Positions 7,781 through 61,429 of a DNA stretch of 64,000 bases are shown here, piece after piece; position 1 is the stretch's first letter; the number at the start of each line of letters is the position of its first letter. The translations under genes were made by a program, and so were the position numbers. The notes under the pieces are model-generated. The model made no database searches and was not told the DNA's origin. It was given only the letters and a program-made list of their open reading frames with translations. The DNA comes from Adineta vaga (taxonomy: Eukaryota; Animalia; Rotifera), in the NCBI GenBank assembly GCA_021613535.1, contig CP075493.1, forward strand, positions 15,562,001 to 15,626,000. The letters are read 5' to 3'.

Positions 7781-8039
7781 TAATCCATCACAGCACTAAA
7801 TATCGAGACGCAACACAGACTATGTAAGAAAGACAATATATCATAAACAAGAGAAAAACCCACTCGTTCTCTTATTGTATAATCACAGAAAAAAATACTT
7901 TAATAAAATAAAAGTTGTAAAATAGTGATATTACGATTCGTCAATACCCATGAAGATAAAGCGCTGTTTCTTTTCCTTTTGTTTTGTTATATGATTGCTA
8001 TACATTTTTCAAATACGTTTTATTAATCTGTATACGACG

Positions 8040-11000: not shown

Positions 11001-14000
11001 TGGTCTTATTGCGAAAATATATCCGCCGTAGATTTTTACCTTCGGAAAGCAATTCGAAAAAGTTATTTCTCCATTTTCGACACAATTCTACCTAATTTAT
11101 CAAGTTCACAATCAAATACTTTTATACAAATTCTCTTCAATCACTTCAATTTTCAATATACATCTGATGATCTTCTCATTCTATTACATTACCAAATCCC
11201 ACGAAAATGTTTTTCTTTAATTGATGCTCATTCGGATCGAACGAAATTTTTCGCCTATAATTGGTTTCGATTGTTTACCGTAAACTTGTGTCAAAATATT
11301 CAATTAGATCAAACTAAAGGAAAATTCCAACCGATTTTAGAGCAACAACGAGATCTTTTATTTCGATCATTTATTCAAAGTCAACTCGAACTAATTGAAA
11401 CGACTAATACAGACGAAGAAGAAAAGCAAGAACATCTACCAGAATCATTCAAAGATTTGCCTTACAGTTGGTTTCATTATCTTTTTATCCGAGATGTATC
11501 AACGGGAATTTCGTCTAAATTCGAAAAAGAGCTTTGGATCAATCAATATTTATTTCTGCTACTTCGTTGTTTTCATTTCGACGTACATCTTCGAACAATA
11601 TGTGCTACTTTATCGTACATTGAACGCTTATTGAATATTTATCATCAAAGTAGATCCAAAATAACTAGATTACTTTCCTTGAAAATTCTACGTCAATTAA
11701 TTCCATATCTGCCGAAGCATACTAACGACGGATCGAAAATTCTAATAGAAGAATTTTTAATTGAAATTCTTCATTCCATTAACGCAAGTTTCTCTTCTTC
11801 ACAACAGCTACCTGCTGAATTAGTCACGGAATTAATTTATCTGTATCGCACTGTAGTGTCTTGTTGGTCACCATGGCAATTGATGGCTATTAACTTCATC
11901 TTTAATTCTATTACATCTCATCTAAACTTAACATCATTCCAATCAAATGACACACTGATCGCCTCATTATGCATATTGGGTGGATACATAGATCATGTCA
12001 GTTTGGGTTCTATCGTTCGAGTGACAACTGATCAAGAAATAAATTATGAGTCTCGCTTAGCGATGGTCATAGAGATAAATTCAGACTCTTCGATCTGTTC
12101 AATCCAATATTTCGATGGAAATCAAATTCAATCGAAAACAATTGATCAACTTCAAGTTGTTGTTCAAGTTACACCACCTAATCTACTGTCATTACCGACA
12201 GTAGATGTATCGATCGATTCCATTTTCGATGCATTTGGACACTTTCTCCAACTCAAACCCATCGCATCTGAATCATTAAAATTTTTACAAATGAAACGTC
12301 GTTCTCTCTCTGCTCTCAATCATCTTTTACAATATCAAAAGATGGTAGAAATATTCATGAGTAAATCATACGCTTCACTCATTGCTCAATTATCCATGCC
12401 AGAATCTCTAACAACATCGACTAATCTTACTTACTTAAACAAAAAACTTCTAGAGCAATATTCCCTCCACTTAGATATGTGTCAACACTCGCAACCCGTT
12501 TCCAACGATCATCGATCAATTGTAGTAGCTTTATCAACACCGATCTCAAAATATAATGGATGGAAATCATTTGCATCGAAAACAGAGATTCAAATGTGGA
12601 AACAAGGTCGAACTGGTAATGACAAAATTAAATTGATTCCATTTCCAATTAGTGCTGTCAAACCAGAAGTTTTCGAGACATGTGGTCAAAATCATCAATT
12701 CAAAGGACGAATTGTTCTCAAACAAGGATATAGTCATGTAAAATATCCAACTTTTACTGTCGAGAATATTCAACTGACTGAAGGAAAATGGTATTTTTGT
12801 GTGAAATTACTCACGCGTGATATTATTCAAATCGGATGGGCAACACAAGGATTTACAGCAGAACGTGTTCATAAATTCGGATTAGGTGATGATAAATATT
12901 CATGGTCTTATGATGTTTTATGTAGAGTATTTCTCAATGATGGAATAGAGGGAGACCAATCCAATGATATTCGCTGGAGAAAAAATGATGTTTGTGGTTG
13001 TGGAATTGATATCGATGGTAAGAATACTAATATCAAATACTGGCTAAATGGTAAACTATTAGATGCAGCTTTTAAACATCTAGAGTTTATTCCTCAATCA
13101 GATACGAAATGTAATCTACTTCCTCATGGACGAGCAACAACTTTTTTTCCTGGAGTTTCTTTACTAAATCGAGATTCATCAACGAATTCTTGTGAATTGA
13201 TTTTTAGTCCCGAAGATATGCAACAATGTCCCCTACCGATTGGTTACAAGCCAGTTCTATTACCGACATTAGTTCATACCGAGAATTCTCTCGTTGCATA
13301 TCCTTCCCATGCTTATGTTGTTGGTGACATTTCAAAAGACTATGTCTATACATCACGAACTATGCCATCAACATTACTTTTACGTGATTTTGTTAATAAA
13401 GATCATTTCGCGGTTAGATTTCAGATTGATGAATATGGAGTTATTTTGTCGGAAGATAGCGAAGGTTTTCCGTTAACTATTGAGAGAGACGTCTCTTGTT
13501 TTTCCATCACATATGATTTCCAACTTTTACAAACCGCAAATGAGATGGAAACCATCACATTAGTTATGACGAATAGTTTTTCCATCGAAATTCCTTTGAC
13601 AAACTTTAATCAAATAACTCGAGTGATCATGGTGGGTAATATCAATGAACAACAACTTAAAGTTTATTGGGATAATCAAAACCAAACATATCAAACTCGA
13701 TTTCCAAATGAAACAACGAATCTATTAACTCTATATCATTTGTCAAAGATTGCTGCTAGACTGAAAAATATTGCTATTTGGAATTATGCTCTTCCTGAAG
13801 ATCATATTCATCGTTTATTTACTTATGGTCTCTTTTACATTGCAACAGACTATCAACAATTGGAAGAACATCGAAAACGAATGAATACTTTTTCTTTCAT
13901 AGATAAACAATTTTCAGACGAATATCTCATTCCATTTGATGAACCATTTGATGAAGATATTTGGCAAAGAAAGAAAAATCAGGCTGATCAAAATGAAGAG

Positions 14001-17000
14001 AAATACTTTTCAAAAGAAGAATCATCAACAATTGAATTAATTGGAAATAAAAGTTATCTTGTCCTTGAAAAGCCCATCGAACAATGGTCAGAATATACTA
14101 TTATTCTCGATGTATCCATTGTAAATTGGCCGATCAACGGCAAAGAATGGTCACTTATACAACTGAACGATATGTCGAAAATATCTATTACACACGAAGG
14201 TAAAATTTGTTTGAAATCTGAAGTAACCGAAGAGAAAAGTCAATTGACGTTAAATCTCAACGAATACTATCGTTTGTGTATCATTGTTAAAGAAACATCA
14301 TGTCAAATCTTTACTAATGGACAATTGCAGATCGATATGAAAGTGAAGGATGCGCAATTTATCGCTGAGTCAAATCGATTTTATTTATTTCAAGAAAACG
14401 ATATATTGGAAGAAACCAGCTATGAAAATACTTTAAGAATCCGTTGTCAATCAATAACTTTACTCAATCGATCGATGCCAATAGATGAACGTATCAAGAC
14501 TCCAAATTTTTCACTTCAATCATTAGTAACACCACCATTATCAATCATCGTACCGAGTTTAATCGCCATTGGACATCAGCTAGAATGGATTAAATACATT
14601 ATCGAACAATACAAAACAACAAACGTTGCGATGATTGATCGTATTCTGCGCGAACAGAAAGGACAACTGGAGAAGAATGTTTTAGAAAATAGGAACAAAC
14701 AATTTATACAGATTCTCTCCGCTTTAAGTCCGACAATCGATCAACAAAAGCTGAATGATTTGATCTCTGCTGAGAAGTTTTTCAATTATGATCAAATTAG
14801 CAATGTTAGTCGATTCATTCTAACTCATTGGAACGATTTACAACGAACCGAATTACATGATCTCGGTAACGAGATTGAACTCAACGATTGGATTCATAAC
14901 CCATCGATAATTGCAGCAGAAAGTAATGGTGGAATTCAAGTGAGCAATCGAAATCGTCGTAATACTCAACAGTCATTATCTTCTTCTTCTTCTTCTTCTT
15001 CTTCAAGCGAAGACAATGACGATGACTCTTCTAGCGTTTCTTCGGATCGTCGAAATGACCAACGTGAGGATAGTGATGAAGTAATTGTTTATAGATTGTA
15101 TGATCTAGCTGAAGAACAACGCGAGAAATTAATCTACCTTGAAAATCAACAAAGAGCAATGGAAGATCTATCCAGTCAAAGATATACTCAATCACATATC
15201 TATTGTGAACAAAACTTAATAACGGTTTATGCTCGTGATATCCTTCTTAATATGCTCAAAGTCTGGTCAAACCAATCGATAACGCTTTTCCCTTTGGATA
15301 AATTTGGTGATTGGAATTTTGTAGTGAAATTATTTCGAGTAATGTTTTATCATTACACATCCATTAAAGAAAATATTGATGACATGAGTTTATTAATCCT
15401 TTCACTGTTGAAAGTAGAAGTAAAACAAATCATCGAACAAAATCTTGAAAATAGAACACCGTTACTCTGTGCATTACAAGAAGATATTTTTGGTCAAATC
15501 ATTCAATTTCTACTGGAATCATCCTCATTGCGAAATGAGAGTTTAAAATTTATTTGGAAAGTATTGAATCTTTTTGTAGAATTGATTAGAGATAAATCGA
15601 CAATGAAACAAAATCAGATCGATATACTGCTCCCACACGTATTTCCTGTTCCAATGATCAATCTAATCTTCAAACTTCTTCAATCAGTTGAAGATCATCA
15701 ATCGAAAATCTTCATTGTTCGTCTGTTTTCTAGTTTAATTCAAATCAGTAATTCTTTTAAATTAAATGTAGAAATAAAACAATTTTTTGTTACATTACTT
15801 CATGAACTTCCATCGAATGAATCGATTATGGATGTAGTATTTCTTCTCAGTGAACAACAGGCTGAACTACAATATGCTGAGTTGCCAGAAAATGTTCCCG
15901 AACTCTTCAAATGCATTCATATCATCATTGCTTTGACTGATCTAACCAAACAAACTGTCGTACGAGAAGAATTATTTACCGAATTCAAAGATCACCTAAA
16001 CGGCGTGCAATTCACTCGTGCTGATTTCAACAGATCTAATGCTCATTTCAATCAAATTGCCGATTTTCAATTACTTGATTTCATGGACAAAAGTCAAAAA
16101 TTTAAAAAATCTCCTATTGAATTTCTTCGTACTTTACCGGAAGAATCTACTCCTAATTCAATTTTTTATCAGAATCATCCGTCATTATCAAGTATTCCGG
16201 CTGATTGTGTGCGGATTCGGGCGATAGTTTTATATATACTGAATGCTCTTATCATTAATATTTCATCGTTCGTCGATTGCAGTTTATCGCCAGGAGAAAG
16301 TTTTCTAACAGATCAAATTCGAAAAGCAAAGATGTATATTTTTTCTTCAAAGAAATGTCAACTTCTCGATCAATCAATTCTAGCAACCGAATCGGGATCT
16401 AATCATGAAAATCTTTCCGTTTATTTCGATGTCCTCAAAGCCTCTCTTTCCAATGAAAACTACGAAAATACGATGTTTTATCAAGCTTACCGACAGCTAT
16501 GCGACAAGGCACAGGATAGTTTCAGAAAAAAAGATAAACAGCTCTGGATAGCACAGTATATAGATATGCATAGTACTGATATAGGTGGGCCTTATCGTGA
16601 TTCAATTACTCAGATTTGTTCGGATATCTGTAGTACACGATTACCCTTATTTATTTTATGTCCAAACGGTCGAACACACAGTGCTTCGAATCAAGATTGT
16701 TGGATTCCTAATGTTTTTCCACCGAATAAATCCATTCCAGAAACATTCCAGAAACAATATCGTTTTGTTGGTCAATTGATGGGATTAGCTACTAGAAAAA
16801 AACATTATTTGAACGTCAAATTTGCACCATTGCTTTGGAAAGAATTACTCTACGAACCGATCACTATCCACGATATACAAGCCATTGATGCACAAAGTTT
16901 TACATTGATTCACGAAGTTGAACAGCAAATTCAACAAGCTATGTTATTTGATACCGATGCTAATACTTTTGATATTTTCAATAGTGTTTTAAGTGAAGTA

Positions 17001-17717
17001 CATTTCGAAGTGGTTGGTTCAGCACAACAAACTTTTGAATTGATACCAAATGGAAGTCAAATTCCAATTACTGCAGAGAATTTTTCGAACTATTCTTTTC
17101 ATTATCGTCAATACCGTCTTAATGAATTTCATCGGCAAATTGATTATATTCGTCAAGGATTGCATTCAGTGGTTCCTTCTTATTATTTGAATATATTTAC
17201 GGCTAAGGAATTAGAAGAAGCTGTTTGTGGCAAAGGTTATATCGATGTCGAACTTTTGAAACGAAATACAACTTACGGAGATGGTTATAATCAAAATGCA
17301 CCTGTGATTGATTGTTTTTGGAAAGTGATGAGTGAAATGTTCACTGAAGAACAAAAGAAAATGTTGTTAGTATTTGCTTGGGGACGAAGTACACTACCAA
17401 TTCGAGACGAAGATTTCAGTTCAAAATTCAAGATTTGCAAATATCATGTGCAAAGCGACAACATCGATCATACACTTCCACGTAAGTCATGTTTGATAAA
17501 ATTTGAAGAATAGTGAAATAATGGATGTGTTTTAGGATCTCATACTTGTAGTTTTACTATCGATCTACCTGAATATTCGACTTTAGAGATCATGCACGAG
17601 CGTTTGAATTGTGCAATTACTTATTGTTCAAATATCGATGGTGATGGAAATATGGATGCAGAAAATGTCAATTATAACGATGACTCCAGTAGTGATGATG
17701 ATGATGATGATGAATAG
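8040..17717 (+). CDS. giant SPRY- and HECT-domain E3 ubiquitin ligase (~3200 aa; exons 8040-17481, 17536-17717)
   Basis: SPRY: GKWYFCVKLL...IQIGWAT...GLGDDKYSWSYD. HECT: DIGGPYRDSI...YRFVGQLMGLA...FELIPNG...ELEEAVCG...FWKVM. A 54-nt intron (17482-17535) restores LPRSHTCSFTIDLPEY with the catalytic Cys. First ATG is at 8040. Confidence 0.9.
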
Positions 17718-18672: not shown

Positions 18673-18720
18673 GGATGACTTGAGTATTTTATGAATTAAT
18701 AAATAGAAAAAATAGATTTG

Positions 18721-21700
18721 TTAGTTCTTACAATTGTTCTTATAAATAGATAAGTCATTTGATACTCTATTTGTAACAACTAAATTCAATTTTCCATTAT
18801 TTTTTAGAGAACCCGATGCAATAGATGTTGGTGAATTTCCAGTTACGTATATAAGAGGAGTCTCGAATGTTCCATCACCTCGTCCAAGTAATACACTAAT
18901 AGTATTATCAACTGTATTTATTACACTTAAATCAAGTTTTGTGTCATTATTAAAATCTCCATCAGTTAAAACACTCGGCCATGTACCCACTGTATAATTG
19001 ATCGGATTTTGAAACGTTGCATTACCATTGCCAAGGTATATGCTCACAGTATTAGCTAATTGATTCGTTATTGCTAAGTCTTGTTTACCATTTTTATCAA
19101 AATCATTCGCTATTATGTAAATTGGCCATAGTCCGGTCGTATAATTCTTTCGAGTTGTAAAATTTCCAGTACCATCACCAAATAGTATAGTGAAAAGGTT
19201 ATCGTAGGAATTTGCTACTACGATATCTATTTTATAATTACCATCAAAGTCACCTGTTGTTACAGATGATATCTTACGACCAACTGTATGAAATGTTGCA
19301 TTCTTGAATGTTCCATTTTTATCACCAAGAAGTACGCTAACTGTAGTATCTTCATAATTAACTACGATTATATCTAATATGTTATCGTTATTCAAATCAG
19401 TTGATGTTAATGCTTCTGGCCAACTACCAACCATATAGGTTTTAGATGATTGAAAAAACCCATCTCCACGATTCAGTAGTACAGTAATAGAATCGTTCCA
19501 AGAGTTTGTTACTGCAAGATCCATTTTTGTATCATTATTGAAATCCTCGGCTATGACACAAGTTGGTGTTTGACCAACCATATAACTCATAGGTGTTAGG
19601 AAATTTAGATTTCCATCATTAAGTATAATATTAACGGTACTATCACCATAACAGCTCATTGCTAAATCTGGCGTTTGATTATTATCAAAATCAGCTGCAT
19701 GTACAAATCGTGGTAGTTGACATGCAAGCATCTGTACTGGATAAAAATAAGTGCCAAATCCAAGAGAACATATGAGACCGATTGTATTACCATCATTGCG
19801 ACCGATGAGGAGATCTAGATAACTATCATTATTTAAATCAACCGAAATAACTGACGTTAGAGAAAAGCCAATCGGATGTTCTACAGATATGTTAAAACTT
19901 CCATTGCCATTTCCCATTAAAATATAGAGTAATGGATCGAATTGAGTGATCACTGCCAAATCCAATTCTTTGTCATTATTGTAATCTAATACTGCCATAG
20001 AAATTATACCATGACGAAACAGATAATTGATTCCAGTTTGAAAAGTACCATCACCATTTCCATATAATATACTAGTTATATTGTCATCTCGATTAGCTAT
20101 GATAAGATCCAGTTCATTATCATAATTAAAATCATCTACTACCATAGCAATAGGATAAGAACTAACAGTATAGTTATTTGTCAGTTCAAACATTCCATTT
20201 GCACGGCCAAGTAAAATACTGATACTGTTATCCCCGGAGTTTGCAATTGCTAGATCTAATCTACCATCATGATTGAAATCGGATGATACAATAAAATTTG
20301 GTGTGCGACCAACATTATAAATGAAAAAAGGTTGAAAGGTTCCATTTCCGTTTCCAAATATAACAAGAATCGTATGATTGATCCAATCTGTCACTACTAA
20401 ATCCATGTTTGTATCATTATTGAAATCCCTTGAGATCACATAAGATGGACTATTGTAAAGACTATAATTCATCGAACTATGAAAAAGTCCATTACCTTCA
20501 CCAAACATTACGATGACAATTTTATTAATTTTATTGAACACTACCATATCCAGATTACCGTCTTTATCGAAATCTCCTGATATTACAAACTCTGGCATTC
20601 GATTAACTTTATACGATCCAGGAATTTCAAGAGTTTCATCTTCTTTTCCAAGGAGTATCCCCACAGTACCATCTTCAGTTATAATTGCCATATCTAATTG
20701 TTGTTGATTTCTGAAATGACCAAATGTAGCAAACATTGGTTTATGTCGACCTGGAAGAGTAATTGGCGTCTGAAAAGGATCATTACATTCTTCTTCTGAA
20801 AACAAAAGACTATTCATTATTTTCAATTAAGGAGTTTAAGAACAAATTGAACCTGATAATTTGTTCTTTGATCTTGTTGCTAAAACTGATGCAAGAATAA
20901 TTCCACCAATAATTAAAGCAAATAAAAGACAAAGTGGAATATCATATCGTTTCTTTCGATACCATTGACGACTAAGGAAACATTTCTTAGAGTAAATTAC
21001 ACAAAAAAATCAAATTCAACTTACACTATTTTTGGATAAACATTCGCTCCTAAAATAAAACATCAAGAATTATTGAGAAATTGAAATTTCTTTCTTTTAC
21101 CTTCAAATGGAGGTTTCAGTAAAACTTGTTCCGGTTTAATTTGCTTCAAATGAATAATATAAAGATCTGATGCTGGACTAAATTGTGATTGAACAATCAT
21201 TTGAGTATTTGGTAAGAGAAGAACTTCATTTTCAGTAACAAAATGTGAATGATTTTGAATTGTTCGACCATTAAATGCTTCAACAGAGAACAATGTTCGA
21301 TGTCCATCTTTTCCCAAGTAAATATTATTTTCCAAAACAAGAGTTTCTGTTGTACATGATGAAAATGCTGACCATGTTACTTGTTTTCCAGATGGAAAAT
21401 TTTGACTTAAATTCTTTGTCACTCCTCTCCAAACTGTCAAAGGCGGAACACAAGGTAATTTAACAAGAGCAGTTAAGAATAATTTCAAATATTTATAATA
21501 TGGTTGAAGAAGTTCTTGATTATTACTTTTTAATGTTCGATTGAGCATTCGATAAAAACTTGGATGAGGTTTAATCCATTCAATTGTATAAAGACGAATT
21601 GCTGCACTTTCATCAATTGTTAATCCATCTGATGGTTGTTCAGGTGTTTCATCAAGTGCCATTTTAACATATTTTGCTAGATCATGAATGATATTTTCTA

Positions 21701-21995
21701 ATGGTGCACATGCTTTATAAAGTGGTAATAAAGGTTCATATGCATAATCAATCAATGGAAGGAAATTTTCTTCTGTATCATTGGTCTGCTCTGATGTATT
21801 TGTGATACCAACAAAATCTTCGACAATTCGAGCGCTATTAGCAAGAGTATTCGTTTGAAATCTTTCATCAGATATTCTTCCTTCAACGTAATTATTTTCA
21901 TCTGAAACATTTGGATGATCAATTACTTCGGGATTATCATGTGCAACTGACACTAATTCAATTTGATCAGATTTTCGTCTTGATGGTTGATGCAT
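18721..21995 (-). CDS. type II membrane protein: ADP-ribosyltransferase (R-S-E) - TM - ~14 FG-GAP repeats; paralog 1 (exons 21995-21101, 21049-21025, 20971-20853, 20795-18721)
   Basis: ART motifs TVWRGV, FSSCT, ENEVLL. Three GT-AG introns (51, 53, 57 nt) join in frame: ...PPFEG-ANVYPKIV-RQWYRKKRYDIPLCLLFALIIGGIILASVLATRSKNKLS-EEECNDPF... into DFNxDGxLDL...G.GDGTF repeats. Confidence 0.88.
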
Positions 21996-26199: not shown

Positions 26200-26268
26200 A
26201 TTAAATTCACTAAATTTTCTTTTTTATTAGCACTTTCGAATTCATTTAAAAAAAATTTGAAAAGTAAT

Positions 26269-26343
26269 TGGTAGTAGTGGGATTTGAACCCACGAAAGAG
26301 CAGTGCTTAAAACTGCCGCCATAGACCGCTCGGCCATACTACC
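26269..26343 (-). tRNA. tRNA-Leu(TAA) with a short (6-nt) variable loop
   Basis: GGTAGTA/TACTACC acceptor stem, A73, D-arm GCC-GAGCGGTCTAT-GGC, anticodon arm GCAGT-TTTAAGC-ACTGC, V-loop TCTTTC, T-arm GTGGG-TTCAAAT-CCCAC, downstream T-run. Confidence 0.75.
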
Positions 26344-26503
26344 GAAAAATAAATTGACAAATATAATTTCCATTCAGAACATACTCACTTATGCAATATG
26401 TCTTAGCTATTGCATCATACATCAAGAAAACAGTATGAATGTGACGTCATTTTTTCGTTCTTTTTTACAAAAAATGAATCTCTATGTTATGTCGTTATTA
26501 ATT

Positions 26504-31092: not shown

Positions 31093-31563
31093 TTTAGAAT
31101 CTAATAATATAGAACGTAGATTTTAAATTAAATTAATTAATTAACATATTGTTTATTCAAGAAAGTCAAAATGATCAAAATTGAAGAATTAACTAAAATC
31201 ATTCTGTTTGAATGTGCCTAACAATTTAAGTTAAGTTAACAAATACTCACTCGGTTTTTTCCGTTTTTAGTATCAAGTAATAATATTCTTTTCTTATGAA
31301 GAAAAAGAGATGTAGTTTGATATTGAAATAATATCATTGTTCTTTATATAACATTCGACAAGAGAATCAGATAAAGATTTGTTTTTTGCATTTATTATTG
31401 TGAAGGAAAGGGAAAAAAAATGAAAACTCTTAGTTATGTTTCAAGATTAAAACGTCATTAAATGACACATCACCTTGTAAACTATGTTCTTTTTATAATA
31501 AGAAAGAAGAGTATGTAGCTGTGAATTGTGAGGTTATCTTCAATCGTGTCTTCAAAAAGTAAT

Positions 31564-31638
31564 TGGTAGTAGTAGGATTCGAACCCACGAAAGAACAGTG
31601 CTTGAAACTGCCGCCATAGACCGCTCGGCCATACTACC
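31564..31638 (-). tRNA. tRNA-Leu(CAA) with a short (6-nt) variable loop
   Basis: GGTAGTATGGCCGAGCGGTCTATGGCGGCAGTTTCAAGCACTGTTCTTTCGTGGGTTCGAATCCTACTACTACCA; all four stems pair; TTTTT terminator 6 nt downstream. Confidence 0.78.
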
Positions 31639-31831
31639 GAAAGATGTAGTGAGAACATAAGATTCTGTTCTCTTAGAAAAACATTCTTCATAGAATCGAT
31701 TGTTCATCAAGTGAAAAACAATAGATTTCAATTCCATGAGATATAACCTTAAATTCATCATAGATTGACATTATTATCATTTACCGATCATCGTTTCGAA
31801 CAGATACACTTCGCTCGTTATGACGCATTAT

Positions 31832-31876
31832 AGGGTGTGGGTATTCTTTTCATTACACACCCACACCCGCACCCTC
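31832..31876. repeat. telomere-like inverted hairpin element at the edge of tRNA module B
   Basis: agggtgtgggt-attcttttcatta-cacacccacacccgcaccctc. Confidence 0.75.
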
Positions 31877-37136: not shown

Positions 37137-39593
37137 TTATTGATGATTATGTTCGAGTTTTTGTTGAAGGCGTGCAATATTTTTTCTAGTTTTTCTACAA
37201 ATCTCACCATAAGAATGAAGATCAGTATTACACATTTTCATTATTGAACGATAATAGTGTAATGCCTTTCGTAATTTCTTCATATCTTCATATACAGTAG
37301 CTAAACGATCAAGATTAATCATTAAATCATACATTTTGTCGGGAAAATAACGTTGACGAATGTCTAAAGCTTTTTTGTAAAATTCGATGGATTTTTCGTA
37401 TAGCTTCATGGTTCTGTAAGTCCGAGCAATATTGTCCAGAGTACGAACCATATGTTCATATTCTTTCGGTTTCAGTCTCTTTTGAGCGCTAAGTGCTTCC
37501 AATCGATATTCCAGAGCTTTGCCAGGATCATGTTCAAAAGTTTTTGCAATATCTTCAAGGATGTTGGAAACATTACGTTGTTGAGGAGGTGGTAGACATT
37601 TCCGTGTCATCTCAAGTGATTTTTGATAATAATCCAAAGCTTCGTTTCGGTTCTTCATTGCAAAATATATTTTACCGATGAAGTATAAACTAGAAGCGAT
37701 GTTAAGATGTTCGGGTAAGAGACATTCTTGTCGAAGTTTCAAAGCCATAAGGTTACAGTCAAGTGCTTTATCGTACTTTCCTTGTCGCCAGTAAGACCTT
37801 GCTATGTCAATGTAACTAAACGCATGTATATGATGTTTAGGTGGGAAAAATAATTTTCTTATTTCCGAAGCTTTATTTTGATAAATTATCGCTTTCTCAT
37901 GATCTTTTACACGCCAATAATACCGCCCGATGGAACTGTATATGGCTGCGCTCTCACCGTTATTATCACCTATTGTGCTTTTGAAAATATTTATCGCTTG
38001 TGTATGGCATTCTAAAGCCTTTGAAAATTTCCTCTGTCTATCAAAAACTAGACCCTTTCCGTGAAGTATCAGAGCTAAATGTATTTCCTCTCCTGAATTA
38101 GATTTCGAAGCTAAATTATATGCTTCATTTAAATGTTCTAAGGCTTCTTCACACTTATTCTGATGTTGTAGAGCGATACCAATTCGATTATGAATACGGG
38201 AAAGCTTTTCACCACCTGGATTCTTTAAAAGTTTTCGAAAATAATCTAATGATTTATTATACTGTCCAATTCTTTTTAATAATATTCCTATCATCAGTCT
38301 CGGACTTTCATACTTCATATCTTCTCTATATATTTCTTTATATTGTTTCGCAAGTTCTCCTCCTTTGTCAGTTGTTTTTATTTTGATTGAGTAATAATCA
38401 TTCTTAACGTCTTGCTCTATACTCTCAACCTGAAAGATTGAACCTGCATTAAACAAATATTCTTCTTCCGCATTACCAAACTGACTTAAACTGCTTATAT
38501 CCGCGAAAATGATCGAATCTTTACAGTGACATAGATCGCACTCGATTTCATATAAAACTGGTATAAAATCTGAATCTCTTCGGATAAATATTTCTGCACA
38601 CGAAATATTGCGACTAGTAGACCAATATTCGTTAGTTGCAATAAGCTTTCCTTTCGTTAACGTCAAACTTTCTAGTTCTTGCTTATGCAGACCTGAACCA
38701 CGGTATAAAATGAGTTTTTCTTCATTTTTATTCTTCATCTTTTCACATTCTCGATGGAGTTGTTTTGATAAACCAGCTATGTAGTAACGAAATTGATAGA
38801 GCTGTTCAATATCTTCTGTTCGGAGAGCCTTATTAATTATTTCAAATATAAATGTTGGCTTTGTATACCACCGAATACAATCTTTAATTTGAAAGGTTCG
38901 ATCGAATTCGTCGATCGTTTTAAGAGTTTGATCATTATCTTGATAAATTTGACGACAAACGTTTAACATTTCTTCCTTTGCACCACAATCATCATCAGGA
39001 GATAAGTGTTGAATAACTTCATGGAATAATTGAAACCTACGATGAAAAGTCATTTTTATATATTTTTATTTCTTCTCGTTATAGAACACAAGATATCCTG
39101 TTTCAAGTTCAAATATACATTACCAGAGATATCGACCAGAATATTTTGATAAATCACAAGTACCTTGCTGATATCGATTATAATTCGAAGGTAATTCTAT
39201 ACATTTGTTGAATTTATCGACAGTTTCCTTTATTGATTGAATAAGATCATCAGAATTATTAAAACTACCCACAATTTTTTCTTTAATAATATTATCAAAT
39301 AAATCTGTAGAATTTGCTGGAAAAATAAATAATGACTTTGATGACGATAGTTCGAGAATTCCTCTACGATACTTGACTGCATCTTCAGCAGATATAATAA
39401 CAAATATCTTTTGATTTTTTGTTGTTTCCATACTCTGGGTGAGTATATCAATATCCGTATAACAAATAATATTGATATTTTTAACAATTTTATTCTTATC
39501 ATCATCACCGGGATTGAACCACATAAGCGTTACATTTTCCTCAAGTTTTTTAACAGAATTCATTGTAGTTAATAAACGATCTTGTGAAGACAT
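37137..39593 (-). CDS. ADP-ribosyltransferase + TPR repeat protein (exons 39593-39124, 39036-37137)
   Basis: Intron 39123-39037 joins GRYLW-FQLFHEVI in frame. ART motifs LYRGSGL, WSTSRN, EEEYLF, followed by ~8 kinesin-light-chain-type TPRs. Confidence 0.88.
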
Positions 39594-41927: not shown

Positions 41928-42219
41928 ATTTATTGCTGGTGACAATCAAGTCTATCTATGTCAATGGTTATGATTAGTTACTGGTGTCAAGTTGAAGTTT
42001 AATTCATTGAAAATAACCAAATTAGTTCAATATGGTTTTCTTAACATCCAATTCCATGTTTTGTTCTAATTTACATTTGTAACATCTGTATATTTTTCAT
42101 TGAATTGTGTTTGTGTTATAATTGATAATGATCTTCAAATAAGGTCGAACATTCCTGTTTAATAAAAAAACTCTTTACATTTCATTAAAACCTCGTTCTT
42201 CGTTATATTATATTATTCA

Positions 42220-42745
42220 ATAAATGACACGTCACCTTGTAAAATATGTTCTTTTTATAATAAGAAAGAAGAGTATGTAGCTGTGAATTGTGAGGTTATC
42301 TTCAATCGTGTCTTCAAAAAGTAATTGGTAGTAGTAGGATTCGAACCCACGAAAGAACAGTGCTTGAAACTGCCGCCATAGACCGCTCGGCCATACTACC
42401 GAAAGATGTAGTGAGAACATAAGATTCTGTTCTGTTTCTTTTCATAATCAATCATGCAATAACTCTCACTTATTGCATCATACATCAAGAAACAGTAACA
42501 ATGTGATGTCATTTCATTGAAAGCATAGAAAACATTCTGCACAGCATCGATTGTTGATCAAATGAAAAACAATAGATTTCAATTCCATGAGATATAACCT
42601 GAAATTCATCATAGATTGACATTATTATCATTTACCGATCATCGTTTCGAACAGATACACTTCGCTCGTTATAACAATGCGTTATAGGGTGTGGTTATTC
42701 TGTTCAACACACACCGACACCCAACTGTGACATATCCTCAAGATG
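42220..42745. repeat. dispersed tRNA-bearing module, copy C (ends in a hairpin element at 42687-42745)
   Basis: Near-identical blocks shared with copies B and D; terminal agggtgtggtt...cacacaccgacaccc...cctcaagatg. Confidence 0.85.
42326..42400 (-). tRNA. tRNA-Leu(CAA) with a short variable loop
   Basis: Identical to 31564-31638. Confidence 0.78.
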
Positions 42746-43027: not shown

Positions 43028-44053
43028 ATGGCAAACTCTTTACATCGTTTAAATTCTTCATTAAGTGATAAGAATTTTAAACTATCATGGGATATCGTTC
43101 GGTCTAAATTGATTCCACTTGATCATTCATCGATTGATGCAATTCTTACACACGACAATCCTCAACAACCTACTATTGTTCTTCCTGATGGCCGAACATT
43201 TTTCTGGTACCTTGCTATAGGAAGTATGAATAATCCGATATCATTGTATCTTCGAAATCTCTCTCCAATTCTTTCGTATCCAGCAAGATGTCTTAATTAT
43301 CGTGTTGTTTTTCGAGGGCCTGGTGGTATGGCTGATTTAGAACTGTGTGATGAAGCAGAATTCGATGGAGTTGTTCATTTACTTTCTGAAGAGCAAATGG
43401 ATCGTTTAGATAAAATGGAAATGAGCTATCAACGAATCGTAGTTCCGATTATTGACTATCAAAATCAATCTCATGCTGTCTATGCATATCAAATGACATT
43501 AACGAATATGCTAGATAATTTGCCAAGCGAACGTTATCTCGATATCATTGTGAAAGGATGTGAACATTATGGTGTTCGCTCAGAGTATATCAATCGACTA
43601 CGACAGGAGCAACCAGTAGTGCCTCGAAAAGAACCGCACATGTATCAGTCTATTACGGATGTACCGTCTGATGTATTTTATACACTTGATGAACTTGCAA
43701 AACATAACGGAACTGATCCTGAATATCCATTATGGATTTGTATTAATGGTAAAATTCTAGAACATGTTGGACTACCACCTAGTGATGATCCTGATTACGA
43801 AACACAAAAACGTTTCCACGCCATTATCCATTCACGATTTTCTGGACGTGAAGCTGATTTTGAAATAGCCAAAGGCTTATATGAACCTTTGCACAAGTTA
43901 CCATTAAGTGAAGAAGACTTGTCCGATGAACATCGAGCAATGCTTGAAGATAATTATCTATCAATGCTGTTTCGAGGTGGTCAAAACAATATCTACTGGA
44001 AACCCGTCGGACGATTGTATCGGTCGAGCAAGAATACGAACTCCTCCTCATAG
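43028..44053 (+). CDS. gamma-glutamylcyclotransferase (AIG2-like) domain fused to a cytochrome b5-like heme/steroid-binding domain
   Basis: FWYLAIGSMNN...GVVHLLSEEQMDRLDKMEMSY...PSERYLDIIVKGCEHYGV (GGCT) followed by FYTLDELAKHNGTDPEYPLWICINGKILE (cyt-b5 fold start); intronless. Confidence 0.75.
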   Translation: MANSLHRLNSSLSDKNFKLSWDIVRSKLIPLDHSSIDAILTHDNPQQPTIVLPDGRTFFWYLAIGSMNNPISLYLRNLSPILSYPARCLNYRVVFRGPGGMADLELCDEAEFDGVVHLLSEEQMDRLDKMEMSYQRIVVPIIDYQNQSHAVYAYQMTLTNMLDNLPSERYLDIIVKGCEHYGVRSEYINRLRQEQPVVPRKEPHMYQSITDVPSDVFYTLDELAKHNGTDPEYPLWICINGKILEHVGLPPSDDPDYETQKRFHAIIHSRFSGREADFEIAKGLYEPLHKLPLSEEDLSDEHRAMLEDNYLSMLFRGGQNNIYWKPVGRLYRSSKNTNSSS

Positions 44054-49125: not shown

Positions 49126-49239
49126 TACACAATATCAGATCCTTCGAAATTGAGCAAATAACTTACTTAGCTAAACTTTATCATATTATAGCACAACTGT
49201 ATATTCCAGCTATTTCTAACGTAATAAAAAGAAAATATT

Positions 49240-49890
49240 TACTCGGTTTTTTTTCGTTCTTAGTATCAAGTAATAATATAATTTTCTTTTGAAAAAACAG
49301 AGATATAGTTTGATATTGATGTAATATCCTTGTTCTTTGTATAACATTCGACAATAGAATCAGATAAAGATTTGTTTTTGAAATTATTATTGTGAAGAAA
49401 AGAAGAAAAAATTAAATTTTTGCTAATGTTTCAAGATTAAAACTTCGTTAAATGACGCATAACATTATAAAATATGTTCTTATTATAATATAGGAAAGGA
49501 GTAATGATTTCGCAAGAACAAAGGTGAGAATGTGGCTGTGAATTGTGAGGATATCTCTAATCGTGTCTTCAAAAAGTAATTGGTAGTAGTAGGATTCGAA
49601 CCCACGAAAGAACAGTGCTTGAAACTGCCGCCATAGACCGCTCGGCCATACTACCGAAAGATGTAGTGAGAACATAAGATTCTGTTCTGTTTCTTTTCAT
49701 AATCAATCATGCAATAACTCTCACTTATTGCATCATACATCAAGAAACAGTAACAATGTGATGTCATTTCATTGAAAGCATAGAAAACATTCTGCACAGC
49801 ATCGATTGTTGATCAAGTGAAAAACAGTAGACTTCAACTCTATGAGATGTAACCTTAACTTCATCGTTTCAGAAAGATACACTTCGCTGA
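49240..49890. repeat. dispersed tRNA-bearing module, copy D
   Basis: Matches 31250-31460 on one side and 42400-42580 on the other. Confidence 0.85.
49581..49655 (-). tRNA. tRNA-Leu(CAA) with a short variable loop
   Basis: Identical to 31564-31638. Confidence 0.78.
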
Positions 49891-56465: not shown

Positions 56466-57788
56466 TTAGTTTTTGATGAATTGTTTAATGGCATTGACAA
56501 GTTGCTGGCGTGTTTTTAAAACTCCAGTATTTGGATATGATGTTCCACGAGCAGATGGATCATGAAAATAAGATGCATAAAATCTATCTTGTCTTATAAC
56601 AGGTTCAAAATAAGTACTTCTTGCCATTGGAAGAAGATAACGATAAGGTTTTGTTGTTGAAAAGTCTTCATTGGCTACAACAGCTGCTTGCATTCGTGGT
56701 GAGGCCATAAATTTAACAAAAGCTTGTGCAGCAGTTAATTTTTCTGGTGATAAATTACGTCGAAAAACATAAGCATCATTAAAGAAAGATGGTTTATAAG
56801 TTGAATCACCGAATGGTATTGGTTGTATTTTAATTTCTTGAGGATTTGATAGTAAACCATATTTTAGAATATAGAAAAGTCTTTCCGAATAACCAAACAT
56901 AGCTGGACTATGTTTATTACCAAATAATTCAGCTGGTAATTCTACATCTTTTTTAAATGTTCCATCAAGACAAGGATTTGTTCTCCAAAAAAGATCACAA
57001 AGTCGTGCAAATTTCTTCATTGGTTTAAATGAAAGATATTCATATCCATGAAGAGCTTCAGCTTCCGCACGAGATGTCAACATTGATTGATCTCGATGAG
57101 AATCCATCCAAAGAGCTGTCATAGTCCAACTTGAATCTAAATTTCCCACCAGACGAAATGGTTGACCTGCACCTGTTTTATTCACATATTTTTCCAATTC
57201 TTCTAACGTATGAATTGGATTCATATTTGTTACATCACCATGTGTAAAGAGAAAAAATGCACACATTATATGAGGATAAGCATATGTAGCTTGATTAACT
57301 TGCACAGCTGAATAAGCAGCTGGATGCCAATCATATGTTTCTGTACTTGGATATGTATAATTAACTTGAGGACTAACAAGACCAATATCAACAAGATCAC
57401 CAAGAACTAATGTATCAATTTCTACGACATCATATCCTGATTCATTTGGTTGAAGAAGATTTGAAAGAAATGTTAAATCATAAAAATCATCATTGGTATT
57501 CATTTGATGAAAATTAAGACGAATTTTTGGATAAACTTTTTTAAATTCATCACGAATGAATTGCAATAAATGTGCATTATTTCCATTATATGGATCAGGT
57601 ATATATGGGAATGGTGCCACTTTTAAAATTGTTTCATCAGGCAATGCTTTTTCATCAAATAATTCGTCGTTAGTAGGAACATTTTCAATAATCGACGATT
57701 GTTTTGAATAACTTTTCATTTCGACACTATTTCCATAATTGATTAACAAAATAATTATTATCAATCCAATAAAATATTTCTTATCCAT
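56466..57788 (-). CDS. secreted thiaminase I (thiamine pyridinylase)-like protein
   Basis: Signal peptide; LKVAPFPYIPD, YDVVEIDT, YAYPHIMCAFFLF (catalytic Cys position) and FGYSERL (catalytic Glu position) correspond to the thiaminase I motifs LKVAIYPYVPD, YGLPQILC and GYSE; intronless. Confidence 0.8.
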   Translation of the reverse strand: MDKKYFIGLIIIILLINYGNSVEMKSYSKQSSIIENVPTNDELFDEKALPDETILKVAPFPYIPDPYNGNNAHLLQFIRDEFKKVYPKIRLNFHQMNTNDDFYDLTFLSNLLQPNESGYDVVEIDTLVLGDLVDIGLVSPQVNYTYPSTETYDWHPAAYSAVQVNQATYAYPHIMCAFFLFTHGDVTNMNPIHTLEELEKYVNKTGAGQPFRLVGNLDSSWTMTALWMDSHRDQSMLTSRAEAEALHGYEYLSFKPMKKFARLCDLFWRTNPCLDGTFKKDVELPAELFGNKHSPAMFGYSERLFYILKYGLLSNPQEIKIQPIPFGDSTYKPSFFNDAYVFRRNLSPEKLTAAQAFVKFMASPRMQAAVVANEDFSTTKPYRYLLPMARSTYFEPVIRQDRFYASYFHDPSARGTSYPNTGVLKTRQQLVNAIKQFIKN

Positions 57789-58133
57789 ATTTGGTATTCG
57801 ACGCTAATATCAACACACTTTTGAATCAAACGAATGCTCTGGATATTCAGACTCTCTCTCTGTCTGTCTGTATATATATAGCTTAATTTCAAGTATAAAT
57901 ATAATCATAATAATAAAAAATACACTTGAAAAACATTAATAATAGTTTAAAGATTCTTTTTTTAGATACTTTAGATATAAGTATGTCAATTTTATTTAAT
58001 CGATATCGTAAATTTTATCTTTCAAAATAATCGTAATTCTTCGTTGCTTTATTCAATGAAAAGATAAAATACCTTCGATATGATATTTATATATTTTTAA
58101 ATATATTAGAAAAGAGAAAAAAACAATCGATTT

Positions 58134-61100
58134 TCATTTCTTGCAAATATTTGTATAAACAGATAATTCATTGGATACACCATTTGTAACAATAAGATTT
58201 AATTTTCCTTTATTACCAAGATAACCTGATGCAATAGAATTCGGTGAATTTCCACTTATGTATGTTATAGCAGTTTCAAATGTTCCATCACCTCGTCCAA
58301 GCAATACACTAATGCTACTATCAGCTGTATTTACGATACTTAAATCAAGTTTACCATCATTATTATAATCGTCAGCAATTATAGCACCAGGCCACAGACC
58401 AACTGTGTAATTCATGAGGTTTCGAAATGTTGCATCACCATTTCCAAGGAATATACTCACACTATTATCATTTTTGTTCGTTACCGCTAAATCTTGTTTA
58501 CCATCATTATTAAAATCATTGGATGCTACAGCAATTGGCCAAATACCAGTCGTGTAATTCTTTTGAGTTGGAAAATGTCCAGTCCCATCACCAAATAATA
58601 TGGTAAAAACATTATCATAAGGATTGGTTACTACAATGTCTAATTTATAATCACCATTAAAATCACCAGATCTCACCGAAGATGGTTTACGACCAGCTGG
58701 ATAAAATGTTCCATTCTTTAAAATGTCATCTTTATCACCAAGAAATATACTGATTGTAGTATCATCAGAATTAGCAACGATTACATCTAATCGATTATCA
58801 TTATTCAAATCCACGGATGTCAATGCTCCTGGACAACTACCAACCATATAATCTTTTGATCTTTGAAAAAATCCATTTCCGCTATTCAGCAATATACTGA
58901 TGGAATTTCCAAAAGAATTTGCTATTATTAGATCTGCTTTCGTATCATTATTAAAATTACCCGATATTACAGAACGTGGATATGCACCAATAAAATAACT
59001 CATAGGACTTAGAAATGTATTATTTCCAATACCGAGTAGAATACTAACAGTGTTATCACCATAATTAGTCACTGCTAAATCTGGTTTTTTATCATTATTA
59101 AAATCAGTTATGTGTACAGTCCATGGTAGATGACCAACTATATAACTATTTAATTCAAACCCGCCATTTTCGTGACCAAATAATGCGATAATATAATTGC
59201 TATCGTCACGACCAACTACGAGATCAAGATAACCATCAAGATTCAAATCAAATGAGGTTACAGATAATGGAAAGAGACCAACGTAATAATCCCAATAACC
59301 TATAAAACTTCCATTGCCATTTCCAAACAGAATCTTAACGATAGCGTCATTATAAATAACCACTGCTAAATCAAGATAATTATCATCGTTAAAATTACCA
59401 GATGCGATCGATAGTGCACCACCATTGGTGGGATAGTTTAGTGGATTCTGAAAAGTACCATCGCCATTTCCACATAATATACTGATTTGATTATCACCTC
59501 GATTTGCCACGGCAAGATCTAGTTTATTGTCATTATTAAAATTACCTACTGTTATAAAAACTGGATAATTGCTGGCCCTATAGATGTTGACAAGTTGAAA
59601 ATTTCCATTTGCGTTACCAAGTAAAATACTGATACTGTTATCATCGGCGTTGGCTACTGCTAAATCTAATATACTATTATTATCGAAATCAGCTGCTATG
59701 ACAAATTGTGGTGAATGACCAACTTTATAAGTTATATAAGGCTGAAAAGTTCCATCTCCATTTCCAAATATAACAAGAATCTGATTATTGATAGAATCGG
59801 TTACTATTATATCAAGATTTGCATCATCATTAAAGTGCCCAGATATCACGGAAGATGGCCAATTACTAAGCGTATAATTTATCAAATTATGAAAAAGACC
59901 GTTACCTTCACCAAACATTATGATAATAACATAATCAATAGAATTAGATACAACAATATCCAGATTACCATCTTTATCAAAATCTCCTGATATTACAGAA
60001 GATGGCATTCGACCAGCTTTATATGTTCCAGGAATTTCAAGAGAACCATCTTCTTGTCCAAGGAATAAACTGACAGTATTATCAGTAGCTACAACTGCCA
60101 CGTCGAATTGTTTTTCATTTGTAAAATGACCAAACGTTACAGACGTTGGTCGATATCGAGTCGAATAGCGAATTGGTGCTTGAAAAGGATTATCACATAC
60201 ATCTTCTGAAAACATAAGATTAATAAGTATTGCAATACTCATCAGAAATTAAATCTTTAACCTGATAATTTGTTCTTTGATCTTGTTGCTAAAACTGATG
60301 CAAGAATAATTCCACCAATAATTAAAGCAAATAAAAGACAAAGTGGAATATCATATCGTTTCTTTCGATACCATTGACGACTAAGGAAACATTTCTTAGA
60401 GTAAATTACACAAAAAAAAACAGATTCAACTTACACTATTTTTGGATAAACATTCGCTCCTAAAATAAAACATCAAGAATAATTGATAAATTGAAATTTC
60501 TTTCTTTTACCTTCAAATGGAGGTTTCAGTAAAACTTGTTCCGACTTAATTTGTTTCAAATGAATAATATAAAGATCCGATGCTGGACTGAATTGTGATT
60601 GAACAATCATTTGAGTATTTGGTAAGAGAAGAACTTCATTTTCAGTAACAAAATGTGAATGATTTTGAATAGTTCGACCATTAAATGCTTCAACAGAGAA
60701 CAATGTTCGATGTCCATCTTTTCCCAAGTAAATATTATTTTCCAAAACAAGAGTTTCTGTTGTACATGATGAAAATGCTGACCATGTTACTTGTTTTCCA
60801 GATGGAAAATTTTGACTTAAATTCTTTGTCACTCCTCTCCAAACTGTCAAAGGTGGAACACAAGGTAATTTAACAAGAGCAGTTAAGAATAATTTCAAAT
60901 ATTTATAATATGGTTGAAGAAGTTCTTGATTATTACTTTTTAATGTTCGATTGAGCATTCGATAAAAACTTGGATGAGGTTTAATCCATTCAATTGTATA
61001 AAGACGAATTGCTGCACTTTCATCAATTGTTAATCCATCTGGTGGTTGTTCAGGTGTTTCATCAAGTGCCATTTTAACATATTTTGCTAGATCATGAATG

Positions 61101-61429
61101 ATATTTTCTAATGGTGCACATGCTTTATAAAGTGGTAATAAAGGTTCATATGCATAATCAATCAATGGAAGGAAATTTTCTTCTGTATCATTGATTGATT
61201 CTGAAATATTTTTGATACCAATAAAATCTTCGACGATTCGAGCGCTATTCGCAAGAGTGTTATTTGAAACTTTCATACTTATCGTTGGTAAGATTTCATC
61301 AGGTATTCTTCCTTGAAGGTTATTATTTTCATTGAAAATATTTGGATGATCAGTTATTTGTTTATTAGCATTTATAACTGATACTAATTCAATTCGATCA
61401 GATTTCCGTCTTGATGGTTGTTTGCTCAT
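58134..61429 (-). CDS. type II membrane protein: ADP-ribosyltransferase (R-S-E) - TM - ~14 FG-GAP repeats; paralog 2 (exons 61429-60511, 60459-60435, 60380-60262, 60205-58134)
   Basis: Same exon structure and phases as paralog 1; the junction reads ...KNKLS-EDVCDNPFQ; ART motifs TVWRGV, FSSCT, ENEVLL. Confidence 0.88.

Follow-up and report, generated by a model that had tools for sequence, protein, structure and literature searches.

How do two genes come to be nearly identical over a stretch in their middle, introns included, and old on either side of it? The question is raised by a pair of paralogs on chromosome 1 of the bdelloid rotifer Adineta vaga, here gene A and gene B, each of which encodes an ADP-ribosyltransferase (ART) domain, a transmembrane (TM) helix and an ectodomain of FG-GAP repeats. 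Both lie within the window, a stretch of 64,000 nucleotides (nt) of assembly GCA_021613535.1 (contig CP075493.1, positions 15,562,001 to 15,626,000 of the forward strand), whose own numbering is used below unless another locus is named. The two genes stand in direct orientation with their start codons 39,434 nt apart, in line with the distance of about 39 kb given in an original prediction made from the sequence alone. That prediction had proposed that recent gene conversion or exon swapping keeps the catalytic and membrane-spanning part constant between the two loci as the sensor exon diverges, in the manner of immune receptors. On our analysis, the pattern is very probably the work of non-allelic gene conversion of the ART–TM module between A and B.

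A homogenised block within two old genes

The block occupies positions 60259–61193 of gene B (minus strand; 935 nt), where it takes in the ART core, intron 1, a micro-exon, intron 2, the TM exon and the first 3 nt of intron 3, and its counterpart in gene A lies at 20850–21783 (minus strand; 934 nt). Over these 934/935 nt the two copies are 98.6% identical, differing by 12 substitutions and one single-base indel. The original prediction had set the limits at 21782–20853 and 61192–60262 and had counted about a dozen differences by eye, introns included; its limits proved right to within 1–3 nt. Broken down by part, the block holds the last 683 nt of exon 1, an intron 1 identical at 49/51 positions (96%), a micro-exon identical at 25/25, an intron 2 identical at 51/54 (94%) and a TM exon identical at 119/119 (60262–60380 in B and 20853–20971 in A, both on the minus strand).

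At the 3′ edge, intron 3 opens with gttcaatttg in one gene and gttaaagatt in the other, exactly as first read, and similarity is at background from position +4 onward, with 34/57 positions of the intron matching after optimal alignment. Old sequence 3′ of the block begins with intron 3 of B (60206–60261, minus strand), which cannot be aligned with A 20796–20852. The 5′ edge is marked by seven differences clustered in 13 nt (A 21796–21784). Beyond the edges, the N-terminal tails, described as diverged from the outset, are about 84% identical at the nucleotide level and carry a 21-nt indel, and exon 4, which encodes the FG-GAP ectodomain, shows 72–73% nucleotide and 58.3% protein identity, inside the range of 55–65% that had been estimated by eye. 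The 5′ untranslated regions (UTRs), promoters and 3′ flanks of the two genes cannot be aligned.

Synonymous sites show the same partition. By the Nei–Gojobori method, synonymous divergence (dS) is 0.042 in the block (where its nonsynonymous counterpart, dN, is 0.004), 0.12–0.24 in the N-terminal tail and 0.61–0.62 in exon 4; a uniform dS across the whole gene, the outcome that the original prediction had named as telling against it, is clearly not what we find. A gradient of dS is present on both sides of the block, with values in exon 4 of 0.24–0.40 over the first 100 codons and 1.3–1.6 in mid-exon. If the block were as diverged as the FG-GAP exon, the binomial probability of finding no more than 13 differences in its 934 nt would be 7e-109; at 16%, the divergence expected for an unconverted ART core of equal age, it would be 5e-52.

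Could the block have stayed alike without any copying, either through purifying selection on the ART–TM part or through a recent duplication of the whole gene followed by runaway evolution of the ectodomain? No part of these proteins is better conserved in the family than the ART (block dN of 0.004; 73% identity among paralogs against 54% for the ectodomain), but the homogenisation extends to synonymous sites and to two introns, and constraint on the protein cannot explain introns at 94–96% identity because those of unconverted paralogs agree at 41–47%. An exon 4 dS of 0.62, together with an intron 3, promoters and 3′ flanks that are past alignment, indicates that the gene as a whole is old. 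We attach next to no probability to such a reading, which the dS values and the introns already refute. That homogenisation reached synonymous sites and two introns, with old sequence on both sides, instead upholds the proposal of copying at the DNA level by gene conversion.

Two other simple events were considered and set aside. A single unequal crossover is ruled out by the old sequence that flanks the block on both sides. Segmental duplication was rejected, as A and B have different neighbours and can be aligned in their gene bodies alone; when the window is compared with itself by BLAST, the sole match is that of the two gene bodies (18695–21989 against 58105–61420).

Relationship of the two genes and a third copy

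Genome-wide (the genome searched being the six contigs, 100.8 Mb in all, of the A. vaga assembly), the FG-GAP exon of A has its best match in that of B and the reverse, at 73% identity over their full length, and the next matches are partial and reach at most 70%. The two genes are sisters with 100% support both in a DNA tree of the ART core (path length 0.012) and in a protein tree of the FG-GAP exon (path length 0.79). The shared block is therefore a patch within a pair of sisters; it does not mark a chimera built from genes that are unrelated.

The alternative offered by the original prediction, exon swapping, finds no support as far as genes that are not sisters are concerned: the FG-GAP exon of A has its nearest relative in that of B, and vice versa. 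In the sole candidate pair for a swap, the FG-GAP exon of locus C2:385k looked unrelated to its ART partner in a free tree, but sisterhood withstood the approximately unbiased (AU) test (p=0.69, with the constrained tree even better), and no incongruence between modules was therefore shown.

A third copy, about 365 kb away at C1:15215502–15216047 (C1:15.215M), is degraded. It consists of a 5′UTR, an N-terminal tail and an ART core, has lost about 225 nt internally and is without TM and FG-GAP exons; GenBank lists it as a hypothetical protein of 250 aa (UJR18121.1). Its 5′UTR is 74% identical to that of A and 52%, the background level, to that of B, and its tail has the features of A's tail, which places its descent in the A lineage. 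Its block is 90–93% identical to that of B and 88–93% to that of A, and its tail is just 81% identical to that of B; these values indicate that the block of B belongs to a pool held in common with the A lineage and that the flanks of B lie outside this pool. Where the third copy allows differences between A and B to be polarised, A has the odd state at 9/9 sites (p=0.004). Searches of protein collections, including an exhaustive search of cluster representatives, gave no closer orthologue, with protein identities of at most 74% for the ART exon and at most 44% for the FG-GAP exon.

Layering of the block and the proposed mechanism

Divergence is unevenly spread along the block. From 5′ to 3′ there are 2 differences in 522 nt, 11 in 252 nt and 0 in 160 nt, equivalent to 0.4%, 4.4% and 0% (chi-square p=1.4e-5). 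The middle segment, at A 21010–21261 (minus strand), extends from the last part of exon 1 into the beginning of intron 2 and holds 11/13 of all differences, being either older or differently sourced. Given segments of such different divergence and a dS gradient on both sides of the block, conversion was probably repeated rather than a single event.

A and B are old sister duplicates. In the process that we propose, a central stretch of about 935 bp was copied from one locus into the other by non-allelic, non-crossover homologous recombination, that is, by interlocus gene conversion. Recombination and gene conversion between homologous chromosomes are documented in A. vaga (PMC8494291). Repeated conversion would have acted within a domain that shrinks over time. 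Conversion tracts depend on homology at their flanks. An ectodomain exon that evolves fast and a neutral intron 3 would long have been out of reach, and the edge of the domain would retreat through neutral sequence and stall at the last constrained exon, here the end of the TM exon. Short neutral introns lying between conserved exons would be carried along, whereas intron 3, beside the fast exon 4, would not. Selection against overwriting a diverged ectodomain may contribute to this process, though it would not be required.

Tracts in other pairs of the family

This ART core recurs at 30 or more loci in the genome, at 68–76% nucleotide identity and mostly in the ART/TM/FG-GAP layout. The layout typical of the family is a cytosolic (by prediction) ART with an intact R-S-ExE motif, a micro-exon, a TM exon and a single large ectodomain exon of either FG-GAP or PAN type. 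Among unconverted paralogs, identity is 73% in the ART core, 68% in the micro-exon, 63% in the TM exon and 53–55% in exon 4, with introns at 41–47%.

Beyond A and B, at least three independent pairs have a homogenised ART–TM module. C2:385k and C2:484k share a tract of 682 nt at 97% identity (core dS of 0.13 versus FG-GAP dS of 0.97) that ends 5 nt into intron 2. The convergent genes C6:316k and C6:319k share 1049 nt at 99.1%, ending 22 nt before intron 3, and their ectodomains are diverged and of the PAN/Apple type, encoded at this locus (C6:314394–321000) by exons that stand in place of FG-GAP. In the likewise convergent pair C3:6.275M and C3:6.289M, a tract of 1110 nt at 99.5% ends about 32 nt before intron 3, and a second identical tract of about 600 nt lies within the FG-GAP exon. 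With this last pair C3:4.858M shares 460 nt at 95% (core dS of 0.24 versus FG-GAP dS of 0.60). A control, C2:484k and C5:305k, is uniformly about 95% identical along the whole gene. The constant/variable layout first noticed at A and B is thus real and repeated in other pairs of the family.

The control pair is part of a larger match, in which the receptor-ART gene and its flanks at C2:482560–488564 and C5:303661–309277, at homoeologous chromosome ends, are about 95% identical over about 4.7 kb. Such a match, far closer than usual between homoeologues, suggests a recent ectopic transfer between subtelomeric regions.

In the wider family, a search with the ART core returned 3239 cluster representatives at E ≤1e-3, and those that carry a species or genus name come from bdelloids (Adineta steineri, A. 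ricciae, Rotaria and Didymodactylos). Rotaria also has a protein that combines ART with FG-GAP, and in other bdelloid proteins the fusion partner of the ART is an LRR, TPR, AIG1 GTPase, MACPF, polyubiquitin or PBZ domain. Full-text literature searches yielded no description of receptor-like ARTs of this kind; one paper touches briefly on the expansion in A. vaga of repeat families, FG-GAP among them (PMC3846280).

The third copy and the additional pairs bear also on the possibility that the block is an artefact of assembly or polishing, with mis-assigned reads or a collapsed repeat having written it into one of the two loci. A single assembly stands behind the block, and an earlier A. vaga assembly, of 2013, had artefactual structures (PMC8494291). 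But the 13 differences that are left are structured, the flanks at both loci are unique and have not been swapped, a repeat of 0.9 kb is far shorter than long reads, and mis-polishing would be unable to replace introns that otherwise do not align. Four other locus pairs look alike, at identities of 95–99.5% and with varied tract lengths, the third copy independently backs the sequence of the block, and the structure of AV20, the chromosome-level assembly analysed here, was cross-checked by three assemblies (PMC8494291). We consider an error of this kind very improbable.

Position of the 3′ edge

The 3′ end of the tract could be resolved in four cases (A/B, C2, C6 and C3), all of which fall within about 200 nt, between the micro-exon and intron 3. 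Two of the four are at a splice donor (A/B and C2) and the other two lie 22–32 nt upstream of one, inside the TM exon and just past the TM helix. As a rule, then, the switch exactly at an intron that the original prediction had emphasised does not hold. Since only two of the four ends coincide with a donor, the recurring limit is the boundary between the ART–TM and ectodomain modules rather than the intron, and the intron-exact edge of A/B is a coincidence of one pair within this broader rule.

Edges near splice sites could in principle arise independently of homology, by microhomology template switching or by repair templated on an incompletely spliced transcript or a free 5′-exon intermediate. 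In two of the four cases the tract stops no more than 5 nt from a 5′ splice site (of intron 3 in A/B and of intron 2 in the C2 pair), there is no alignable homology just 3′ of the A/B junction, and intron-retaining retro-copying of host genes, of the Penelope type, has been reported in A. vaga (PMC3846280). Set against this are the other two tracts, which end within the TM exon, the 5′ ends of the tracts, which are not at the transcript start, and the segments of differing age in the block, which suggest repeated homologous events; no retroelement sequence or target-site duplication was seen at the junctions. We judge such an origin very unlikely.

The boundary may also reflect a selected receptor design, in which selection would remove tracts that overwrite ectodomains with useful ligand specificities and may favour a uniform ART–TM cassette, the whole serving a diversifying and possibly immune repertoire. 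The clustering of four independent 3′ ends within about 200 nt at the module boundary speaks in its favour, as do the joining of one ART–TM module to differing ectodomains, FG-GAP or PAN, the fusion of bdelloid ART elsewhere to LRR, TPR, AIG1 GTPase and MACPF, and a dN/dS of about 1 in the first blade of the propeller; in opsins, moreover, a divergence peak is maintained by selection under ongoing conversion (PMC3924837). However, pairwise dN/dS between A and B is 0.46 over exon 4 as a whole and nowhere clearly above 1, with values of 0.9–1.1 only in the first 75 codons (the N-terminal tail is also at about 1), and the conversion tract of 600 nt persists within the FG-GAP exon of the C3 pair. 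The boundary coincides, too, with a family-wide drop in identity and is explicable by homology alone. At this overall dN/dS, diversifying selection on the sensor exon is at most conjectural, and we regard a selected design as possible but doubtful. The converted domain is the most conserved part of the gene in this family, so a homology limit is the most economical account of the sharp 3′ edge; a homology-limited edge and selection for distinct ectodomains are not, as we see it, mutually exclusive.

Several points weigh against interlocus conversion as described here. In the databases searched there is no close orthologue by which to fix the direction or the age of the events, and the model does not account for the one-sidedness of the differences, all nine polarisable ones being on the A side. 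The block is known from one assembly. Conversion at about 16% divergence would be inefficient, so that near-continuous conversion since the duplication would be needed. Lastly, divergence goes from 0% to about 40% within 10 nt at the splice donor, which is sharper than simple erosion of the edge predicts.

Gene models, encoded domains and topology

Genes A and B are both on the minus strand and have an identical four-exon layout, with GT-AG introns of 51–57 nt and the reading frame kept throughout. Gene B (58134–61429) has 1044 codons, counted across its exons, and a stop at 58136–58134; exon 1 is at 61429–60511, the micro-exon of 25 nt at 60459–60435, the TM exon at 60380–60262 and exon 4 at 60205–58134, separated by introns 1 (60510–60460), 2 (60434–60381) and 3 (60261–60206). 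The 1037 codons of gene A (18721–21995) are distributed over exon 1 at 21995–21101, the micro-exon at 21049–21025, the TM exon at 20971–20853 and exon 4 at 20795–18721, with introns 1 to 3 at 21100–21050, 21024–20972 and 20852–20796, respectively. The same structure, micro-exon included, recurs in paralogs that are just about 70% identical, and this recurrence appears to support the splice model. In domain and database searches, A and B were submitted exon by exon, never as joined proteins, and the codons at the junctions were assigned by eye.

In frame, exon 1 of B (60512–61429, minus strand) encodes 306 aa, made up of a hydrophilic tail of 79 aa without a signal peptide, followed by the ART domain. 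This domain contains the R (TVWRGV), S (SAFSSCT) and ExE (TENEVLLLP) motifs and matches Pfam family PF01129 (NAD:arginine ADP-ribosyltransferase) with 43.4 bits in B and 40.6 bits in A, for a cut-off of 22.3; the WRG, F(S/T)S and ExE motifs are invariant across 25 A. vaga paralogs. The only match of the ART exon in a sequence search of the PDB was spurious, a designed Kelch repeat. The TM exon encodes the basic stretch RQWYRKKRYD, a hydrophobic helix (IPLCLLFALIIGGIILASVLA) and then TRSKNKLS, so that, as read from the sequence, 21 hydrophobic residues have a basic stretch on either side.

Exon 4 of B (in frame 58137–60203, minus strand) encodes 689 aa with about 14 FG-GAP/VCBS repeats of 49 aa, and that of A (in frame 18724–20793, minus strand) encodes 690 aa of FG-GAP repeats, of which blades 7–8 are degenerate. 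Pfam FG-GAP_3 is matched with 1.2e-69 in B, in 11 stretches, and with 2e-63 in A. An AlphaFold model of exon 4 of B (pLDDT, predicted local distance difference test, of 81) is all-beta with 59 strands, and its best matches in a fold search are multi-propeller proteins (UmbA4, DDB1 and SF3B3) at low TM-scores (0.2–0.37), which confirm the fold class alone. When differences between A and B are placed by repeat phase, all that emerges is the conservation of the structural DxNxD, LDL and GxG positions. The FG-GAP exon is intronless, and its best database matches beyond bdelloids are bacterial VCBS/FG-GAP proteins with at most 44% identity; judged from these similarities, the exon may have come from bacteria.

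The lack of a signal peptide, taken together with the positive-inside rule, suggests an N-in/C-out topology, in which a cytosolic ART would be linked by one TM helix to an extracellular FG-GAP propeller.

A possible receptor repertoire

A constant signalling module joined to a variable recognition module is what the family displays, with at least 30 loci, an ART at 73% identity against an ectodomain at 54%, and heads of either FG-GAP or PAN type. By analogy, an immune-receptor reading of the family is plausible. In a fuller form of this idea, the genes would represent an undescribed bdelloid class of receptors that signals by cytosolic arginine ADP-ribosylation, with an ART–TM part kept constant by conversion and propeller or PAN heads diversified by selection, together forming an innate repertoire; we put this forward as speculative and rather unlikely. 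Equally tentative is the analogy by which such a repertoire would follow the logic of plant R-gene and receptor-like-protein clusters in an asexual animal, with ectopic conversion in the place of sexual shuffling.

Neighbouring sequence in the window

Directly 3′ of gene B, at 56466–57788 (minus strand), lies an intronless open reading frame (ORF) of 440 aa with a bacterial solute-binding domain (SBP_bac_8), which is a candidate for horizontal acquisition. A single ORF of 3172 aa at 7995–17513 (plus strand) encodes a SPRY domain and a C-terminal HECT ubiquitin-ligase domain; its first 1500 aa match no Pfam family. Between A and B are found a TPR_12-rich ORF of 638 aa at 37137–39053 (minus strand) and an AIG2-like ORF at 43028–44053 (plus strand), and domains of the TPR and AIG types are fusion partners of this ART family elsewhere in bdelloids. 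The same interval holds a dispersed repeat of about 200–460 nt, 82–98% identical among its copies, at 26260–26452, 31241–31868, 42217–42722 and 49233–49865.

Significance and comparison with known systems

Partial gene conversion between paralogs is a textbook process, of which A and B are a very clean new case, with its closest precedents in the conversions of globins, opsins and paired Siglec receptors; the gene family is the more original part of these results. The case is clean in that one edge is known to within about 5 nt, two introns inside the block provide a neutral reference and the third copy gives the changes a polarity. The ART–TM module acts like a unit of concerted evolution in at least four pairs, with FG-GAP or PAN ectodomains that evolve freely, and this offers a handle on how multigene families are reshaped in an asexual animal known for active DNA repair. 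Given the map of tracts, trees of the family built on the ART mislead on gene age and orthology. Should the family indeed signal across the membrane, it would be a new type of receptor.

In tandem paralogs such as the globins, the opsins and GOT1 of Tigriopus, as here, a tract on the kilobase scale that includes introns is set between old flanks, in genes up to tens of kilobases apart, and homogenised regions coexist with regions that escape. The conversion tract of the human G-gamma and A-gamma globin genes, described by Slightom and co-workers in 1980, reportedly ends in intron 2. The part that escapes in A. vaga is a whole ectodomain exon of 2 kb, not a few sites as in these systems, and the module-limited pattern is found in at least four pairs of one family, in an asexual bdelloid. 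Interlocus conversion with mosaic divergence is on record for the red and green opsins (PMC3924837) and for Tigriopus GOT1 (PMC3728101).

Neighbouring receptor paralogs with one near-identical module after partial conversion are known also from Siglec-5/14 and Siglec-11/16 (PMC4042635, PMC5701461). There the arrangement is reversed: conversion has kept the ligand-binding ectodomains alike and left the signalling tails different, whereas in A. vaga the ART–TM part is homogenised and the ectodomain differs. Comparable in layout are the Hcr9 (Cf-4/Cf-9) genes, plant receptor-like-protein and R-gene clusters reportedly treated by Parniske and co-workers in 1997. They share with the A. vaga family clustered single-pass receptors, a conserved membrane-proximal and TM part, variable repeat ectodomains and exchange between paralogs; unlike in Hcr9, the effector here is an ART and not a short tail or a kinase partner, and a role in recognition is conjectural. 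As for the catalytic domain itself, the R-S-E mono-ADP-ribosyltransferases of the ARTC type, among them vertebrate ecto-ARTs and clostridial C2/C3-like toxins, have in common with the A. vaga proteins the PF01129 domain and the R, S-x-S-type and ExE motifs. Vertebrate ARTCs, however, are secreted or anchored by glycosylphosphatidylinositol, whereas the ART of A. vaga sits at the N-terminal end of a protein without a signal peptide and, by prediction, lies in the cytosol, tethered to a TM helix and an extracellular propeller.

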